IMG/VR virus record: IMGVR_UViG_3300046516_001816
Coordinates: 186,001 to 250,000 of that record
DNA: 64,000 nt
Reading direction: 5' to 3' (one strand)
Shown: positions 2,451 to 31,330 of the stretch, one piece after another
Layout: every line of letters starts with the position of its first letter
Position numbering within the stretch: position 1 is the stretch's first letter
Program-made: the position numbers and the translations under genes
Notes under the pieces: model-generated
What the model was told of the DNA's origin: nothing
The model's database searches: none
What the model saw: the letters and a program-made list of their open reading frames with translations, nothing else

Positions 2451-4646
2451 ATGAACAACAAACTCCTTTCTGCTTTGCTCATCGGTTTCTTTGCTTCGTC
2501 GTCCGCGATGGCCAGCTGCGGCAACGGTAGTAGCGGCAATGGCTGCTCGGGCAGCTCGCCGGAGACGATCAGTTCGGTGAATATCAACGGCACTACCGTC
2601 ACAACGAAGCTTTCGGACGGCAGTTCGGTTTCGGGTTCGGTCACGGGTCTGGCGACGTCCGCGCAACTCAGCACCACCAACAACAACGTCGCGGTGAACA
2701 CCGCATCTATCAACGGCATGCAGACGCAGCTCAACAGCGCCACGTCGGGCTTGAGCAACGTCTCCCAAGGTCTGGTCGCTGAAGGCAATCGCGCTGTCGC
2801 AGCTGAGGCGGGTCTTCAGTCGCAACTGAACGGAGCCATTTCGCAAGCAGGTGCCGCCATCGGTGGCCTGCAAGCTGCGCAAACGCAAACGCAGACCCAG
2901 GTCAACGCGAACACCGCAGCGATCTCGGCTAACGCTGATCAAATCGTCGCCGTGGGCAATGCCGTGACTTCGGAAAGCACGCGCGCCAGCGCCGCTGAAG
3001 GAACGCTCGCGGGTGGTGTGGCAGCCAACTCGGTAGCCGTCGTCGCTGAAACGAGCCGCGCAACCACTGCTGAAGGTGGCCTGCAATCGCAAATCACCGC
3101 GACGAATTCGCAGGTTGCCTCCAACACGTCGGCGATCGGGACCAACGCGCAAGCTATCTCCGCGGAGACGCAACGCGCGACCGCTGCTGAAACGACCATC
3201 AAGGCCCAAGCCACGGGCGCCATGGCTACGGCCAGCAGCGCGCTGGACAACTCCAACACGGCCATGAACACGGCCAATGCTGCGAGCACCACGGCCGGTC
3301 AAGCGAAGTCGATCGCTAATGGTGCGGACGCCAAGGCCAACACAGCCGTCGGTATCGCCACGGGCGCAGCGATCACGGCAACTGGTGCCGCTATCGTCGC
3401 GGGTCACGCAGAAGGTGTTGCAGAAGGTGCAGCTGCGCAAGCTAAGACGGCAACGTCGACGGCGAACACGGCATTGAGCCAGTCGGGTCAGGCACTGAAT
3501 GCTGCATCGAACGCAGGCACGGCAGCGGCGGCTGCACAAGTCACGGCCAATCAAGGCGTGGCGAATGCAGCGCATGCTCAGGGCACGGCCAATGCAGCAC
3601 TGGCTGCCGCGAAGGATGCGGATGCGGACGCGGATCACGCGCAAGCGACGGCTAACCATGCTGACAAGGCAGCCGCGGCTGCTCAGTCGACGGGCAATGC
3701 CGCCCTGTCGCTGGCAGGTACGGCGCAAGCCACGGGTACGGCTGCACTGACGCTCGCTGGTCAAGGTGTGGCGGCTGCCGGCAAAGCACAAGCCACGGCT
3801 AACGTAGCGTTGGGTGTAGGTATTGCAGCAGGGGCAGCTGCCGCGCATGCGCAAGGTACCGCGAATGCAGCTCTGACGGCCACGGGTGCAGAAACCAGCC
3901 GGGCGACAGCCGCAGAGCAACACCTGCAATCGCAGACGACGGCCAATGCATCGGCTATCTCGAGCGAAACGTCGCGCGCTTCGGCTGCTGAAGCGAACCT
4001 GCAAAAGCAGACCACGTCGAACACGAAGGCTATCAAGTCGGAAAGCCAACGTGCTCAAGCTGCGGAAGCCACGAACGCTCATGCCATCTCGGCAGAAACG
4101 TCACGTGCAACTGCGGCTGAAACGAATCTGCAAAAGCAAACCGATGCCAACGGGAAGGCTATCACCACCGAGTCCGCTCGGGCCCAGGGCGCCGAAGCCG
4201 GTATCCAGTCGCAAGTGACGACGCAAGGCAGCAGCATCACCGATCTGCAACAGAAGCAAGCGAATGACACGGTCGCTCAGGCAAAAGCCATGGTCGACAC
4301 GTCGGCGCAAGATCGTGCGTATGCGCAATCGCTGCAACACGATGCCATTCAGCAGTCCCAGCAGTATACGGACATGAAGTTCAATCAAGCTGAAGCGGAT
4401 ATCTCGAAGCTGCGTAGCGATATGTACGGTGGTGTCGCGTCGGCCCTGGCAGTTGCAGGTCTGCCGCAAGCTACGCCGGGTCACACGCTGGTGGGTGGTG
4501 CTGCATCGACCTACCATGGCCAACAAGCCCTGGCGTTCGGTGCGTCGTTCGCCACTGCCAATGAGCACTGGATTGTCAAGGCCGCAGTGACCACGAATAC
4601 CCGTGGTGACTTCGGTGCAGTGATCGGTGCGGGTCGTCAGTTCTAA
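2451..4646 (+). CDS. YadA-type trimeric autotransporter adhesin
   Basis: Signal peptide MNNKLLSALLIGFFASSSAMA; Ala-rich coiled-coil stalk with E(T/S)xRAxAAE repeats; YTD motif; C-terminal anchor GGVASALAVAGLPQ...GAGRQF ending in Phe. Confidence 0.9.
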   Translation: MNNKLLSALLIGFFASSSAMASCGNGSSGNGCSGSSPETISSVNINGTTVTTKLSDGSSVSGSVTGLATSAQLSTTNNNVAVNTASINGMQTQLNSATSGLSNVSQGLVAEGNRAVAAEAGLQSQLNGAISQAGAAIGGLQAAQTQTQTQVNANTAAISANADQIVAVGNAVTSESTRASAAEGTLAGGVAANSVAVVAETSRATTAEGGLQSQITATNSQVASNTSAIGTNAQAISAETQRATAAETTIKAQATGAMATASSALDNSNTAMNTANAASTTAGQAKSIANGADAKANTAVGIATGAAITATGAAIVAGHAEGVAEGAAAQAKTATSTANTALSQSGQALNAASNAGTAAAAAQVTANQGVANAAHAQGTANAALAAAKDADADADHAQATANHADKAAAAAQSTGNAALSLAGTAQATGTAALTLAGQGVAAAGKAQATANVALGVGIAAGAAAAHAQGTANAALTATGAETSRATAAEQHLQSQTTANASAISSETSRASAAEANLQKQTTSNTKAIKSESQRAQAAEATNAHAISAETSRATAAETNLQKQTDANGKAITTESARAQGAEAGIQSQVTTQGSSITDLQQKQANDTVAQAKAMVDTSAQDRAYAQSLQHDAIQQSQQYTDMKFNQAEADISKLRSDMYGGVASALAVAGLPQATPGHTLVGGAASTYHGQQALAFGASFATANEHWIVKAAVTTNTRGDFGAVIGAGRQF

Positions 4647-12103: not shown

Positions 12104-12876
12104 GCATCCTGTCTGACAACCAGATTCGCAGCCGTTGCCTGATTCCGACGCACGTGTTTGTAAATACCCAGAATGCGACGCGTACGTACTATCACGTCGC
12201 TGATAGCGCCATCTACGTGATGAATACGGGCCGGGTCGCGACGACTGACAACGCTTACGCGCACTGGAAGAGCTTGCTGCGCCCCCTCACGGAGGCGGAG
12301 ATCGCCGGTTATTGCGCGATGTATCCGCGCATGATCGCGCCGTTTGAAACGGAGCTGGTTCGTCAACGTAGTATCCCACTCAGTGAGGTGCACGGCTACA
12401 TCGAAAAGGTCATCTCCTACGGCACGTCGTCTTACGGCTACGACGTACGCTGCGCCGACGAGTTTAAGATCTTCACCAACATCAATTCGACGGTGATCGA
12501 TCCGAAGAACTTCGACGACAAGTCGTTCGTGGACTTTAAGGGCGATGTCTGTATCATCCCCCCGAATTCGTTTGCGCTCGCGCGCACCGTGGAGAAGTTC
12601 CATATCCCGCGCGACGTGCTGACGGTCTGCTTGGGCAAATCGACCTACGCGCGCTGCGGTATCATCGTGAACGTGACACCGTTCGAGCCGGAATGGGAAG
12701 GCTACGTGACGCTGGAGTTCAGCAACACGACGCCATTGCCCGCGAAGATCTACGCCCATGAAGGCGTGGCGCAAGTGCTGTTCCTGAAGGCCGACGATAC
12801 GTGCGAGACGTCGTACGCAGACCGCGGTGGCAAGTATCAGGGCCAGGCTGCTGAAGTCGTCTGTCCGAAAGTCTAA
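12100..12876 (+). CDS. dcd: dCTP deaminase with an N-terminal insertion
   Basis: [36 protein letters not shown] and GKYQGQ motifs. Confidence 0.95.
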
Positions 12877-12885
12877 GGAGGCTGT

Positions 12886-13401
12886 ATGGCAAAAACCAAG
12901 TATATCGGTGTTGACGTTGACAAGATCCAGTCTTTTATTGATTACTTGCGTTTACGTTACTCCCAGCTGAATGGAGTTATCTGCTGGGAGAAGCCTAAAG
13001 ATCTTGTTCATCTCGGTAGCTGCGAGGTGTGCGAAGTCATGCATGCGTTCTACCAACTTGGTAGCGAGCGATTTGAAAAAATTCACTGGTCGGATAATTT
13101 CAACGAGTCCGCTTACCGCAAGCTACTTGGTGAAGTCATTCAGGTCATCTTGCGCTTTCATGATCCGGAACTCAAGCGCGCTGCAAAAGCCAACGCACTG
13201 TATTGGAGCAAAGATATTGCCGAGGTAGTGTGGCGGTGTGATGCTTATGCACAGGCGGGTGGCGACGTGGGTGTCGATCATCTGTTGGCCGGCGCTTGGC
13301 TTAACGATGGTGCCAAGCGGATGAAAGGGACCTACGATTGGATTGTGCGCGAGCCTTTGCCGATTCCGCGTCCCGAGGCAATTGTTATTCCCAAAGTGTA
13401 A
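12886..13401 (+). CDS. Hypothetical protein
   Basis: AAGGAGG RBS. Confidence 0.65.
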   Translation: MAKTKYIGVDVDKIQSFIDYLRLRYSQLNGVICWEKPKDLVHLGSCEVCEVMHAFYQLGSERFEKIHWSDNFNESAYRKLLGEVIQVILRFHDPELKRAAKANALYWSKDIAEVVWRCDAYAQAGGDVGVDHLLAGAWLNDGAKRMKGTYDWIVREPLPIPRPEAIVIPKV

Positions 13402-27311: not shown

Positions 27312-27550
27312 TTGTCAAGAACAATGCGCGCTGGCGGAAGGTTATCGCGATGGGCAAGCGCAGCCCTCGCATTGGCGCTAACGTGGGCACGATGTCGCGT
27401 GTCAATTACGACTGGCGCTGCAAAACCCTTCGTGTCGAATTCTGGCGAGTGAAAGCCACGCCCGGGATGATTGCGAAGTGGGCCAAGAAGGGGAAGCGAC
27501 CACCCCAGGCTGGCAAACGGTTCTGTCACATCAGTCCGGGTAAATACTAA
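27308..27550 (+). CDS. Small basic hypothetical protein
   Basis: Coupled ORF. Confidence 0.55.
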   Translation: MIVKNNARWRKVIAMGKRSPRIGANVGTMSRVNYDWRCKTLRVEFWRVKATPGMIAKWAKKGKRPPQAGKRFCHISPGKY

Positions 27551-27565
27551 TAAGGAAGAATAAAC

Positions 27566-28081
27566 GTGAACTACTACTGCGACTTCGAGTTTAACGGTTT
27601 TCAAGGCCGGCCGATTTCGTTGGGATTGGTACGGGAGGACGGGGAAAGTCTTTACCTGCTGTACCCGAAGCTGTTCAAGTACACCAAGTGGGTCGATGAA
27701 AACGTGCTGCCGCATTTGCACTCGACGCCTGACGACGTTGCGATCTATCTGACCTGCTCGTCCGCGTCCATCGTCTCGACCAAGTACCCGCCGGTGGCGA
27801 CGTTCTTGGAGCAGTTCTTTGCGGGGGATCCGAACCCGCACGTAATTACCGATTGGCCGGATGACATCAAGTACCTGACTGAGGAACTTATCGTTGGCCC
27901 GGGCAAAATGATCAACATCCCCCGCATCTCCTTTGAAGTGATGCGCGTGGATGCATGGCCCAACACCATCCCGGAGGCTGTTCAACATAACGCCTATTGG
28001 GACGCCGTTGCTTTGAAAGAGAAAGTAATGGCGCTCAGGAGAACCAACAATGAGTCAAGTCATGGAGTCGGCCCAAGCTGA
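27566..28081 (+). CDS. DEDD 3'-5' exo(ribo)nuclease-like protein
   Basis: YYCDFEF...ISLGLV at the N-terminus; HNAYWDA at the C-terminus. Confidence 0.75.
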   Translation: MNYYCDFEFNGFQGRPISLGLVREDGESLYLLYPKLFKYTKWVDENVLPHLHSTPDDVAIYLTCSSASIVSTKYPPVATFLEQFFAGDPNPHVITDWPDDIKYLTEELIVGPGKMINIPRISFEVMRVDAWPNTIPEAVQHNAYWDAVALKEKVMALRRTNNESSHGVGPS

Positions 28082-28388
28082 TTACGTGTGTTTCTTGCAG
28101 AACATCTTTGCAGACGGCACACTCTCGCGCGGTGACACCCCCGAGCAACTGATACAGGCCCTGGAGCAGCACCCGGACTTTAAGAACCGTTTCAAAACGT
28201 TTCTGAGTCTGTCGCGTGAGATGCTCTCGGGGCTCACCCCGATTGAGGTGCTGTCGGGCCAGCGTGCTCGGGGGCTACCGCCGCCCGAGGCGACGTCGCA
28301 TAAACGGATTCTGGATCGCAAGATAGAGGAGCGCGTGATCAAGGTGATTTACGCGGCACGGGATTACTTCGACGGTACAGGCTTCTAG
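28050..28388 (+). CDS. Hypothetical protein
   Basis: AGGAG RBS; weakly similar to 28400-28744 (PEQL..../EVL.G). Confidence 0.6.
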   Translation: MSQVMESAQADYVCFLQNIFADGTLSRGDTPEQLIQALEQHPDFKNRFKTFLSLSREMLSGLTPIEVLSGQRARGLPPPEATSHKRILDRKIEERVIKVIYAARDYFDGTGF

Positions 28389-28399
28389 GAGCGAAGGCG

Positions 28400-28744
28400 A
28401 TGGGTGAAATAACAACATTTTTGACCGAGGCGTATAACGGGGGTTTCTTTGTGGGTGTGAGTAATCGCGCGCCGGAGCTGCTCCTGGAACAACTGAATAC
28501 TGAAGCGGGGGACCGCGACCGTATCAAAACGTTCATGGCTCACGCCTCGAGAAGCGCCTTCTGTCATCTGACGGTGACCGAAGTACTCGCCGGCAAGGTC
28601 AAGGAAAGCAAGCGTGACGCATGGACGCCGGATTTACTGCAAGAGAGAATGCTGGCCGCACCCTTCCCGGATCGTTTGGCGCGTGTGCTTCGTGAAGCGA
28701 AGTACTGGGATCAGCAGTTGACGCCGGCGGCCGCGTTTTCGTAA
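28400..28744 (+). CDS. Hypothetical protein
   Basis: AGGAG/AAGG RBS. Confidence 0.6.
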   Translation: MGEITTFLTEAYNGGFFVGVSNRAPELLLEQLNTEAGDRDRIKTFMAHASRSAFCHLTVTEVLAGKVKESKRDAWTPDLLQERMLAAPFPDRLARVLREAKYWDQQLTPAAAFS

Positions 28745-28774
28745 TAACAACGAATTAAACAAAGGAGTACTGTC

Positions 28775-29317
28775 ATGACCGTACTGGATCGCAGACATAT
28801 GTTTTTCGAGAAGAACGCACTGGTTCCAGTGGTGCGTTGGCCTGAGATTGCAAATCACTTTGTGGATCCCAACGTGGTGAACTGCTACTCAGTCATGCTG
28901 GGTGAACAGGTGGTCATGACAGCTCCGTTGCAGGTCGGGGTCACGGTGAATCTGCTTGAAGCGTCGCAACCGACGCACTTGCTCGACGAACCGATTACGG
29001 ATTATATCGGAGAGGATTTCAAGCTCGCCCGATTGTATTTCCGGCTCATTAGCCGGCTCAACAATATCGATCGCATCGCCATGATTGAAGTGCTGGATGA
29101 CGTAACACACAGCCGGAGTCGCGACGGCGTGCTGGTGGAGTTCGGTTATGTCTACATGAAGCAGCTGGAGTACCTTTTTGCGGACATCCATATATCGGGT
29201 TGGCTCAATCTCCGAACAGGTGAATGCAAGGTTTCCGGCAGCCACGGCACGAACACGATGGAAGACGGTATTGAGTTAGTCGGCTACACGCTCGCGGCCA
29301 ATAGAGTATCTCAGTAA
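28775..29317 (+). CDS. Hypothetical protein
   Basis: AAGGAG RBS. Confidence 0.65.
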   Translation: MTVLDRRHMFFEKNALVPVVRWPEIANHFVDPNVVNCYSVMLGEQVVMTAPLQVGVTVNLLEASQPTHLLDEPITDYIGEDFKLARLYFRLISRLNNIDRIAMIEVLDDVTHSRSRDGVLVEFGYVYMKQLEYLFADIHISGWLNLRTGECKVSGSHGTNTMEDGIELVGYTLAANRVSQ

Positions 29318-29344
29318 AAAAATACTGGATAATCAATACCTTAT

Positions 29345-29710
29345 GTGAAAGAAGCAGAAATCGTGGACGAGGGAGCTCAGACCCAAACCTTGGCCACGGG
29401 CATCAGCGAGTAGGCGCACGTACGGCGCCCCTGTGGAGGCTTGACAAGCTTAAGCCGCTGAACGCAAAGAGATGCTACGACGCTGGTACTTGTCGGCGAG
29501 TGCGCCAGACCTGGTGGCGTCACGACTCCCCATCTCCACCGAAGGACGCTTTGGTGACACGAGTCAATCTAGTGATTTTGTAGGCGGACTTAATCAACCC
29601 GCGTCCTTGGCATGCTGCGCTTAAGTGCGCGGCCGAAAGGCCTTAAACGATAACGGACCGAAAGGACTGGAAGCGTCGGACAACTGCAAGATCACTAGGC
29701 AAATTTGGTT
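29345..29710 (+). ncRNA. Candidate structured non-coding RNA(s) upstream of the tRNA cluster
   Basis: No + strand ORF; 15-bp closing stem 29569-29583/29684-29698; GGCC-GAAA-GGCC and GCGC-TTAAGT-GCGC hairpins; strand inferred from neighbours. Confidence 0.5.
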
Positions 29711-29727
29711 GCGACTTTCACACCCTT

Positions 29728-29811
29728 GGAAGGGTGCCCGAGTGGTTAAAGGGGGCGGACTGTAAATCCGTTGCTTCGGCTTCGTAGGTTCAAATCCTAC
29801 CTCTTCCACCA
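29728..29811 (+). tRNA. trnY: tRNA-Tyr(GTA)
   Basis: GGAAGGG/CTCTTCC acceptor; CTGTAAA anticodon loop; long variable arm; GTTCAAATC T-loop; CCA end. Confidence 0.95.
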
Positions 29812-29827
29812 TTTTCGTAGTAGCTGT

Positions 29828-29848
29828 TCCCTAGTAGCTCAGTTGGTA
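29828..29848 (+). pseudogene. 5' fragment of a disrupted tRNA-Asn
   Basis: TCCCTAG-TAGCTCAGTTGGTA; TCCCTAG pairs with CTGGGGA of the 3' fragment at 30293-30335. Confidence 0.8.
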
Positions 29849-29854
29849 AAACTC

Positions 29855-30208
29855 ATGACCGAAAAGATCTGCAAGATTCACGGCGCCACCAACTTCTTCC
29901 CGCGCGCTGACGGCGGTAGTCGCTGTGGTCAGTGTTCGGCAGATGCGGTTAAGAATCGTCGTCGAAAGATAAAGCTACTCGCCATCGAGTATAAAGGCGG
30001 CGCATGTGAGAACTGTGGTAATTCGTTTCATCCCGCAGTGTTTGAGTTTCACCACAAGGACCCTAGTCAAAAAGACTTTGCTGTTGGGGCCGGAGGTAAT
30101 GCTAGAGCATGGGAGCTTGTGAAAACAGAGCTGGATAAGTGTTCCATGCTTTGCGCGAATTGTCACCGTATCGAGCATTCAAAGTTGTTTGATGTAGATC
30201 CACGATAG
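29855..30208 (+). CDS. HNH homing endonuclease
   Basis: CxxC (CENC), FEFHHKDP, LCANCHRIEH; ATG directly follows the tRNA 5' fragment. Confidence 0.9.
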   Translation: MTEKICKIHGATNFFPRADGGSRCGQCSADAVKNRRRKIKLLAIEYKGGACENCGNSFHPAVFEFHHKDPSQKDFAVGAGGNARAWELVKTELDKCSMLCANCHRIEHSKLFDVDPR

Positions 30209-30275
30209 CTCAGTTGGTAGTAGCGTCGGACTGTTAATCCGAAGGTCCCTGGTTCGAGCCCAGGTCGTGGAGCCA
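30199..30275 (+). tRNA. trnN: tRNA-Asn(GTT)
   Basis: TCCACGA/TCGTGGA acceptor; TCGGA-CTGTTAA-TCCGA anticodon arm; T-arm; GCCA end. Confidence 0.93.
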
Positions 30276-30292
30276 AACATGTAGTACCCTAG

Positions 30293-30335
30293 GTTAATCC
30301 GTTGGTCGCTGGTTCAAGTCCAGCCTGGGGAGCCA
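30293..30335 (+). pseudogene. 3' fragment of a disrupted tRNA-Asn
   Basis: GTTAATCCGT-TGGTC-GCTGGTTCAAGTCCAGC-CTGGGGA-GCCA: anticodon, T-arm, acceptor 3' strand and CCA. Confidence 0.85.
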
Positions 30336-30350
30336 TTGATTTTGTAGTAC

Positions 30351-30426
30351 GCCCGTTTAGCTCAGCTGGTAGAGCAGCTCATTCGTAATGAGAAGGTCGG
30401 CGATTCGAATTCGTCATCGGGCACCA
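30351..30426 (+). tRNA. trnT: tRNA-Thr(CGT)
   Basis: 76-nt cloverleaf; CTCA-TTCGTAA-TGAG anticodon arm; CCA end. Confidence 0.9.
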
Positions 30427-30479
30427 GTTGATTCAGGAGTGATGCACTCAGTCCTGAATTTACTTTATAAGGCAGCATC

Positions 30480-30701
30480 ATGTTCGTATTAACCGCTAAG
30501 GTGTGGCGTAACGGCTCACTGTGTCGTGAGTATTACCAGCCGGAAGAAACCGGCTTTGTGCCCGGTGTCGTTTTTGGTCTGGATGGTGCGAAGCGCGCCA
30601 AGCAATACCAGACGGAAGAGGAAGCTATCGCTGATATCCCGGTGTTCAGACGGGCTGTTGGGTATCATGATCAACAGGGTGTCGACGTCGTTGCGGTGTA
30701 A
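30480..30701 (+). CDS. Small hypothetical protein between tRNA genes
   Basis: AAGG RBS; 73-aa ORF. Confidence 0.55.
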   Translation: MFVLTAKVWRNGSLCREYYQPEETGFVPGVVFGLDGAKRAKQYQTEEEAIADIPVFRRAVGYHDQQGVDVVAV

Positions 30702-30706
30702 GGTTT

Positions 30707-30780
30707 AGGGGAGTCGCCAAGTTGGTTAAGGCATCGGATTTTGATTCCGACATGCGTAGGTTCGAATCCTACTTCCCCTG
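30707..30780 (+). tRNA. trnQ: tRNA-Gln(TTG), CCA not encoded
   Basis: AGGGGAG/TTCCCCT acceptor; TCGGA-TTTTGAT-TCCGA anticodon arm; GTAGG-TTCGAAT-CCTAC T-arm. Confidence 0.9.
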
Positions 30781-30940
30781 TAAGGAAAGTGCCGGTTCGA
30801 CTCCGGATCAATCGTAGAGGGCTGGGTAGCGACGGGGGACGGTTCGATTCCGGGAAAGATCGCTGGGCGATAAGACGGGTAAAGAGCCCAGGCTTCGGCC
30901 TGGGCTTTATGCCGTTATGGTGTGTTACAGGAGAACGAAC

Positions 30941-31330
30941 ATGGGTATCTTTAACTGGGCGCTGGAGCAAGACGATGTTCGGCCCTTGGCGATCATTATC
31001 ACGGCCAACCCGAATTACATTCTGAAACCCAAGCTCAAAGTGTGGTCGGATGCGCTGTATGCGGATGTGAAAGCACGGCTCGAAGCCCGTGGGTATCGGG
31101 TGGATTTCAATACCGGGTATCAATACAACTTACCTGATCCGAACGCAGCGGTCTGGGTGGGGCACTCGGGCGGGATTAATCGCTTGCAGTACGCACCGGA
31201 GCATGTCAAGACGCTGGCGTTGCAGACGCAGGATCGCAGCAAGACACTCTGGAGTCCGGAGCTTCATATCGACGACATCTCGCACTATCTGCTCTCGGAA
31301 CAGGACATGAAAGCACTATCTGCACTGTAG
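30941..31330 (+). CDS. Hypothetical protein (alpha/beta-hydrolase-like fragment)
   Basis: AGGAG RBS; WVGHSGG nucleophile-elbow-like motif. Confidence 0.6.
   Translation: MGIFNWALEQDDVRPLAIIITANPNYILKPKLKVWSDALYADVKARLEARGYRVDFNTGYQYNLPDPNAAVWVGHSGGINRLQYAPEHVKTLALQTQDRSKTLWSPELHIDDISHYLLSEQDMKALSAL

Follow-up and report, generated by a model that had tools for sequence, protein, structure and literature searches.

A free-standing HNH endonuclease gene and a complete tRNA-Asn gene located within a split tRNA-Asn gene of a phiKZ-like jumbo phage

The stretch of DNA analysed here (64,000 nt, referred to as the window) corresponds to bases 186001-250000 of a 284,983-bp IMG/VR virus record (G000). 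The genome is that of a phiKZ-like jumbo phage; a phiKZ capsid-like domain was recognized in a neighbouring protein, and the hosts of the nearest named phages are Ralstonia and Burkholderia. The whole record contains four intact tRNA genes in one cluster, and the following features were assigned to the cluster and to the split gene within it.

29728..29811, plus strand: tRNA-Tyr(GTA), left neighbour of the split gene (ARAGORN, Rfam)
29812..29827, plus strand: spacer of 16 nt with a GTAGTA motif, which recurs between tRNAs in related phages
29828..29848, plus strand: positions 1-21 of the resident tRNA-Asn (allele r), kept as 5′ remnant, identical to the gene of phage contig L083 (21/21)
29849..30292, plus strand: inserted cassette of 444 nt in place of the 12 nt GAGTAGCGGACT (tRNA positions 22-33), as defined by a relative's contigs
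29855..30208, plus strand: HNH endonuclease gene, 117 aa, ATG at 29855, TAG at 30206-30208 (Pfam, PHROG 2255)
30199..30275, plus strand: complete tRNA-Asn(GTT), allele d, acceptor TCCACGA/TCGTGGA (ARAGORN, Rfam)
30276..30286, plus strand: spacer of 11 nt, AACATGTAGTA, resembling in the alignment the native spacer downstream of the tRNA-Asn of relatives
30287..30292, plus strand: CCCTAG at the right junction, repeating acceptor positions 2-7 (sequence, hexamer counts)
30293..30335, plus strand: positions 34-76 of the resident tRNA-Asn (allele r), kept as 3′ remnant with CCA, matching L083 and L027 (43/43)
30351..30426, plus strand: tRNA-Thr(CGT), right neighbour (ARAGORN), with zero differences to the contigs of the closest relative
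30480..30701, plus strand: conserved small ORF, 73 aa, inside the tRNA cluster, used as synteny anchor
30706..30781, plus strand: tRNA-Gln(TTG), end of the cluster (ARAGORN, Rfam)

The 5′ remnant (21 nt) comprises the 5′ strand of the acceptor stem and the D-arm as far as GGTA, and the 3′ remnant (43 nt) extends from anticodon position G34 through CCA. Complementary acceptor strands had been noticed in a preliminary description of this DNA, and they pair over 7 bp with one G-U pair; the positions given there were all exact when rechecked. A search with an intact-tRNA pattern carrying the resident acceptor stem matched 92 viral contigs. One of these, the complete 313-kb phage contig L083, contains directly after a tRNA-Tyr gene an intact 76-nt tRNA-Asn(GTT) that consists of the 5′ remnant, GAGTAGCGGACT and the 3′ remnant, with 64 of 64 remnant positions identical (21/21 and 43/43). 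The intact tRNA-Asn of L027 differs from the resident type in one base of the D-loop. The remnant pair is no chance resemblance, and the two pieces are parts of one former gene. The folding energies of both remnants did not differ from those of shuffled sequence, and an exact 40-mer of the 3′ remnant gave zero matches in the first metagenome scan.

Contigs of the closest relative detected, which are collinear with the window at 70-98% nucleotide identity, were recovered from two soil-metagenome runs via homologues of the 73-aa ORF. They bridge positions 29848 and 30293 with exactly the 12 nt GAGTAGCGGACT and skip 29849-30292. Contig L148, which covers window positions 27549-30894 at that identity, carries one uninterrupted tRNA-Asn of the same type, with no HNH gene and no second tRNA-Asn at this locus; an intact tRNA-Asn is likewise present in the collinear contig L147. 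The gene order of the closest relative is a homologue of the 180-aa ORF (window 28775-29317), tRNA-Asn, tRNA-Thr, the 73-aa ORF and tRNA-Gln. In the window the Asn and Thr genes are separated by 15 nt, compared with 118 nt in L148, and the two also differ in the region upstream. In L083 and L149 tRNA-Tyr is followed directly by the intact tRNA-Asn, and in L147 and L148 tRNA-Asn is followed by tRNA-Thr; the order Tyr-then-Asn is ancestral. The phage of L083 is distant (proteins 26-41% identical) yet syntenic on both flanks of the tRNA cluster, and the L027 contig belongs to a true relative (proteins 45-84% identical) with the tRNA cluster elsewhere in its genome. When the 180-aa upstream ORF was used as synteny anchor, no relative was found among the viral contigs. 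Since GAGTAGCGGACT is present in the allele of every relative, the window carries a 444-nt insertion and a 12-nt deletion, and the difference does not reflect a loss in the relatives. The preliminary description had called for an uninterrupted TCCCTAG...CTGGGGA tRNA-Asn at this locus in related phages, and such a gene is present in the closest relative, L083 and L149; its proposal that the HNH gene and a second tRNA-Asn form a cassette splitting the resident gene agrees with the location of both inside one 444-nt insertion relative to the empty site. As the remnants are unchanged in comparison with the intact gene of a distant phage, the insertion is probably recent.

Several further observations concern the surroundings of the split gene. 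The 73-aa ORF has just 9 homologues among 5.8 billion proteins and no family match, and on all contigs inspected the homologue belongs to a related phage's tRNA cluster, in which it shortly precedes tRNA-Gln or tRNA-Asp. Just upstream of the homologue, three relatives contain a tRNA with an 8-nt anticodon loop ('tRNA-???', cgaa; L122 943-1020, L150 3584-3661, L151 234-311), which is absent from the window. A (T)GTAGTA or GTAGA motif in spacers before tRNAs was observed in the window (29817-29822, 30281-30286 and 30344-30349) and in L083, L122, L150 and L002; it showed no genome-wide enrichment and may be a processing or promoter signal. The 410 nt upstream of tRNA-Tyr (29318-29727) are without a convincing ORF, and from 29391 the window has no counterpart in the closest relative, in which a 152-aa ORF of unknown function is located there. 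In the relative G002 the whole tRNA cluster with the 73-aa ORF is situated between homologues of G000 genes at approximately 57-58 kb (L129/L130 compared with G000 40-70 kb), and in G000 it is situated at approximately 215 kb, so that the tRNA cluster moves as a block. In L083, positions 12700-13250 of the minus strand contain tRNA-like genes with long insertions, e.g. approximately 55 nt in the anticodon loop, and odd ARAGORN calls (His with anticodon atg, Phe with aaa).

The start codon of the HNH gene (29855) is separated by 6 nt from the end of the 5′ remnant (29848). The encoded protein of 117 aa consists of an N-terminal zinc-ribbon-like module and an HNH core. It was matched by the Pfam HNH profile (PF01844) at 21.5 bits, which is borderline with respect to the cut-off of 21.4, and by PHROG 2255 with an E-value of 1.8e-30. 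In comparison with its homologues the protein is full length and retains every invariant or near-invariant Cys, His and Asn, the conserved residues being C51, C54, H66, H67, C100, N102, C103, H104 and H108. The His-Asn-His motif, paired CxxC ligands and the profile match place it in the HNH family; a GIY-YIG catalytic domain is absent, and HNH families alone were matched. The AF2 model is confident (pLDDT of 86.9); structural comparison with it gave exclusively HNH nucleases as top matches, though weak ones (E-value of 0.14 or worse), while a sequence search of solved structures yielded zero matches. The gene is single-copy in the 284,983-bp genome, and the nearest homologue among 5.8 billion proteins is 58% identical. 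No obvious ribosome-binding site was seen at the HNH start, and a promoter scan found no sigma-70-like promoter near it. The GC content over the cassette is 0.49-0.51 versus approximately 0.55 around it, a slight dip that is not diagnostic. No intron ribozyme family was detected with Rfam in 29300-31000 at E-values up to 10. Due to the 12 missing nucleotides, removal of the insert would not restore the tRNA, and the HNH gene is therefore not housed in a self-splicing intron; it is free-standing, being located outside any self-splicing intron or intein.

The tRNA-Asn(GTT) carried by the cassette is complete (Rfam tRNA, 62.7 bits, one non-standard D-stem pair) and is the sole intact tRNA-Asn among the four tRNA genes of the genome. 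Identity elements of bacterial AsnRS are the GTT anticodon and the G73 discriminator. Both are present in the carried tRNA together with the cloverleaf and CCA, which characterizes it as tRNA-Asn on the level of sequence, and it is presumed to be a replacement copy. The HNH ORF overlaps this tRNA by 10 nt as described previously; not several stop codons, however, but a lone TAG, identical with tRNA positions 8-10, terminates the ORF. The carried and resident alleles differ at positions 22-28 and 41-43, in the T stem and in acceptor base pairs 4-7, and they share 15 identical bases, CGGACTGTTAATCCG, around the anticodon. Since this shared stretch is close to the insertion described here and to a second insertion described below, the resistance of the carried allele to cleavage is not self-evident. 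A metagenome contig, L239, contains the same tRNA body as the carried copy with an acceptor stem of the resident type, from which the carried copy is distinguished by acceptor pairs 4-7 (four compensatory changes) and one further base. An identical tRNA was not found in viral contigs, species genomes or metagenomes. Alignments show that the sequences on either side of the carried tRNA are similar to the native spacers around tRNA-Asn in relatives; the last approximately seven HNH codons are therefore spacer- and tRNA-derived, and the cassette probably stems from a phage that is part of the same broad group. The T arm and the 3′ acceptor strand match the tRNA-Asn of Burkholderiaceae, in line with the hosts of the nearest named phages. 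A direct host origin of the carried tRNA was set aside, because the spacers and the tRNA body match alleles of related phages.

The 3′ fragment is not a plain tRNA half. Immediately before it stands CCCTAG, in which acceptor positions 2-7 are repeated and which lets the 3′ remnant form an acceptor-like stem. This hexamer occurs in 12 copies (9 + 3) on both strands of the 285-kb genome versus approximately 166 expected (approximately 83 per strand), and in view of this rarity the duplicate at the junction is not due to chance. It is not predicted by a simple insertion and may represent a templated insertion, what is left of a partial duplication, or the beginning of another tRNA in the donor. 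Hexamers containing CTAG are approximately ten-fold depleted in G000, with CCTAGG counted 7 + 7 times (expected approximately 83-86 per strand).

A second insertion was identified in contig L158, in which an HNH gene whose product is 52% identical to that of the window is located between the 5′ and 3′ parts of a tRNA gene with perfectly complementary acceptor strands. The sister contig L237 (83-88% nucleotide identity, collinear) contains an intact 75-nt tRNA-Asn at this place. The insert of L158 has a length of 436 nt, replaces 6 nt of the anticodon arm and carries no replacement tRNA, and the TAA stop codon of its HNH ORF is the TAA of the anticodon loop. At both loci, that of the window and that of L158/L237, related genomes thus differ in the presence of the HNH gene, and the target is intact in the allele devoid of it. 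The two deletions overlap at standard positions 29-33, and the right junctions, at the first and the second base of the anticodon, are offset by one base. The overlapping deletions and neighbouring junctions suggest that the cut was made at the anticodon or close to it and that sequence was lost on its 5′ side.

Split or degenerate tRNA sequences were also observed near other HNH homologues. In L210 a 5′ tRNA fragment (1172-1193), which like that of the window breaks off after GGTA, and a solitary 3′ half whose acceptor strand pairs with it (approximately 2229-2271) enclose an HNH gene and three tRNA genes; L210 may be a third case with a larger cassette of the same kind. Halves of tRNAs that are 110-190 nt apart adjoin HNH homologues in L167 (2076-2345) and L186 (1262-1480), where introns or additional insertions might separate them. 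An orphan 5′ tRNA fragment (1181-1212) and a tRNA-like gene without anticodon arm (2452-2510) are located in L135 near a 58%-identical HNH gene. In L158, a sequence right after tRNA-Trp (3107-3175) matched an HDV-like ribozyme at 34.3 bits with an E-value of 0.0014, compared with a gathering threshold of 44 bits.

The first HNH homologues examined are nearly all located in phage tRNA clusters, often beside tRNA-Asn. The family counts at least 563 homologue loci; the survey was extended by 80 further ones, which were reduced to 69 non-redundant loci. A tRNA on the same strand within 1.5 kb is present at 40 of the 69 loci, and at 23 of these 40 a tRNA-Asn is the immediate neighbour. Among the immediate-neighbour tRNAs 26 of 75 are tRNA-Asn, versus 5 of 187 other tRNAs at the same loci (Fisher p 1e-11), a value that overstates independence, since the Asn linkage is clustered on the HNH tree and the HNH protein of the window has no firm place in the Asn-rich part of it. 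The tree is weakly resolved, and at least 10 changes are needed to explain the Asn association. The HNH stop codon is located inside the next tRNA at 14 loci, typically as TAG at tRNA positions 8-10, and the 10-nt overlap with a TAG stop found in the window recurs in L097 and several further survey loci; three loci have a tRNA-Asn on both sides of the HNH gene. In other members of the family the unit of HNH gene and tRNA mostly sits cleanly beside or in front of tRNA-Asn. The link of this HNH family to tRNA-Asn genes is thus supported by the survey as well as by the second, independent intragenic insertion. In addition, HNH homologues of unrelated phages are adjoined by tRNAs, 87-89 nt in length, that have a GTT (Asn) anticodon despite a long variable arm:

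L107, 2622-2710: long-variable-arm GTT tRNA
L135, 1842-1929: long-variable-arm GTT tRNA
L137, 1371-1457: long-variable-arm GTT tRNA
L180, 1329-1416: long-variable-arm GTT tRNA
L181, 1069-1155: long-variable-arm GTT tRNA

In phage FelixO1 (L139, 587-668) an unannotated degenerate tRNA-like sequence ends approximately 15 nt before an HNH homologue.

It is considered probable that a free-standing homing module, in which the 3′ end of an HNH gene is fused to a linked tRNA-Asn, was acquired from a phage belonging to the same broad group and inserted itself into the resident tRNA-Asn gene in place of positions 22-33. Cleavage by the HNH protein, the position of the cut, the immunity of the new allele, and the expression and charging of the carried tRNA are inferred components of this scenario. 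During a mixed infection, the resident tRNA-Asn gene would be nicked or cut by the HNH protein, either at the anticodon or immediately 5′ of it, and the break would be resected on its 5′ side. Imprecise repair from the donor would explain why remnants of the old gene survive at both ends, together with the 6-nt CCCTAG as a templated or duplicated sequence. Afterwards, the split locus would be without a target, the carried tRNA-Asn would keep the phage supplied, and the remnants could act as homology arms for further homing into relatives with an intact gene. RNase P acting at the 5′ end of the carried tRNA would likely cut the HNH message before its stop codon, and control by transcript processing has been discussed for nuclease genes in tRNA clusters (PMC2330249). 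A more far-reaching proposal, to which we attach a rather low probability, is that HNH gene and tRNA-Asn constitute a family-wide mobile module spreading one tRNA-Asn allele among unrelated phages, in which changes in acceptor base pairs 4-7 or in the D and anticodon stems confer self-immunity. If this were true, tRNA helices would play the part of synonymous codons in protein-coding homing sites. By analogy, the mobilized allele might also resist host tRNA-cutting defences, which would make the selfish element an anti-defence vehicle; SegB together with tRNA-Tyr has reportedly been shown to act in this manner recently.

Among the other explanations, an HNH protein of relaxed, SegB-like specificity was considered, for which the Asn linkage would go back to one old fusion to a tRNA-Asn that was carried along with the gene, and the break to relaxed cutting or to recombination between conserved tRNA motifs. 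SegB recognizes a motif conserved in the T arm and cleaves numerous tRNA genes (PMC2330249, PMC13096335), many HNH homologues adjoin other tRNAs (Gly, Ile, Ser, Arg, Glu), the Asn association is phylogenetically clustered, and the apparently split tRNA of L210 is not obviously a tRNA-Asn, although its left break after GGTA is that of the window. We nevertheless judge this explanation unlikely, given that both of the independent intragenic insertions are in tRNA-Asn genes, their right junctions at the anticodon differing by one base, that Asn accounts for 35% of the immediate neighbours versus 3% of the other tRNAs at the same loci, and that tRNA-Asn is found upstream, downstream or on both sides in different lineages. 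The same linkage, far above expectation inside or beside tRNA-Asn, speaks against the HNH gene as a mere passenger of an illegitimate recombination or mosaic boundary that happened to fall in tRNA-Asn, as do the existence of a second pair of empty and filled sites and the compact insert with its family-typical overlap of ORF and tRNA. This passenger role would suit the highly rearranged tRNA clusters, with a different position in G002 and tRNA sets that differ in every relative, and, according to the available part of PMC10448857, nuclease genes often mark exchange boundaries; it is regarded as improbable.

Two successive steps are about equally improbable: the HNH gene alone would have inserted into the anticodon arm, destroying the sole tRNA-Asn, and a second tRNA-Asn with spacers would have been gained later under selection. 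L158 provides an example of an HNH-only insertion, and the CCCTAG duplicate as well as the short 5′ remnant (21 nt, not approximately 30) point to more than one event. On the other hand, HNH gene and carried tRNA are both contained in one 444-nt insert relative to the empty site, and due to the recurrence of the 10-nt overlap with the TAG stop in the family they most simply came as one unit. A chimeric assembly of two phage populations joined at their tRNA-Asn genes is very unlikely, even though the record is a contig assembled from a metagenome and the two soil runs contain the relative instead of this phage: the breakpoints are not at long shared repeats (shared stretches do not exceed 15 nt), an intact ORF continues in frame into the tRNA, and the same architecture is present in unrelated contigs. 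The complementary acceptor strands and the long insertions in tRNA genes of relatives might further recall an intron-like or split-tRNA arrangement from which a working tRNA-Asn is still produced. This has a negligible probability, since the joined pieces amount to 64 nt and, with the 12 absent nucleotides, the 3′ strand of the D stem and the 5′ strand of the anticodon stem are gone, which leaves the molecule devoid of both helices. In accordance with the negative ribozyme search, there is neither the ribozyme core of a group I intron nor a pair of exons joining to a complete tRNA, and, other than in split tRNAs of the Nanoarchaeum type, positions 22-33 are in neither piece.

The entry of a homing module carrying its own tRNA-Asn, the explanation preferred here, is of interest for several reasons. 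Free-standing homing endonucleases are already known from phage tRNA clusters, but in most cases their targets have been deduced from enzyme work on a small number of model phages. In the present case sequence alone provided matched filled and empty sites for two independent events, with the break at the anticodon of tRNA-Asn. An element of this kind can wreck a resident tRNA gene while carrying a substitute, and the data point to an HNH family biased to tRNA-Asn across very different phages (cyanophage-like, enterobacterial, Aeromonas and soil jumbo phages). This offers a route to understanding the shuffling of phage tRNA repertoires, the origin of tRNA fragments and odd tRNA-like genes in clusters, and how a structured RNA gene can become immune to a nuclease yet remain functional.

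Related arrangements are known from other systems. Mobile endonuclease ORFs of fungal mitochondria (e.g. in Allomyces atp6) carry a replacement end of the invaded gene, and the old end persists as a pseudogene. As in the window, the element breaks a host gene and brings a working substitute, with the displaced piece staying alongside; there, however, protein-coding genes receive a partial in-frame replacement, whereas here a whole tRNA gene was brought and both old ends were kept. Upon integrase-mediated insertion of prophages and islands in tRNA genes, tRNA function is maintained by a copy. The insertion into a tRNA gene accompanied by a tRNA copy is shared with the window, but the window has no integrase, the insert comprises just 444 nt, the break is located in the D and anticodon arms instead of the 3′ end, and a whole second gene is present instead of a duplicated 3′ segment.

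The closest parallels are found in phages T5 and T4. The heg genes of T5 (F-TflI, II, IV and others) code for HNH endonucleases in the T5 tRNA region (cited in PMC2330249), and HNH genes are scattered there among tRNA genes (NC_005859). According to this record hegC, hegD and T5.069 overlap the 5′ ends of downstream tRNA genes, one of these tRNA genes is flagged as pseudogene, and tRNA-like stable RNAs of unknown function are located nearby. The T5 proteins are not close homologues of the HNH protein of the window, as hegA alone matched (E-value of 0.004, 26% identity); they are larger and have other DNA-binding modules, and the available portions of the T5 sources describe no pair of empty and filled sites with a split tRNA. 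In T4, SegB is a free-standing GIY-YIG homing endonuclease encoded in the tRNA cluster (PMC2330249; PMC13096335), with a preferred site that lies within T2L's tRNA-Asn gene (PMC2330249). It causes preferential inheritance and rearrangement of the tRNA region and reshapes tRNA loci (PMC2330249; PMC13096335), and according to a figure legend T4 is without some of the tRNA genes present in T2L (PMC2330249). The free-standing nuclease gene within a phage tRNA cluster is common to T4 and the window, but SegB is a GIY-YIG and not an HNH enzyme and its recognition is centred on a T-arm motif; in the available parts of the SegB reports, neither remnants of a split target nor a carried replacement tRNA-Asn are described. 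The HNH protein of the window may work in a SegB-like manner, but it is not a member of the SegB or T5 heg families. While this kind of process is thus already known from T4 SegB and the T5 heg genes, the preserved remnants, the carried replacement tRNA and the bias to tRNA-Asn are new.
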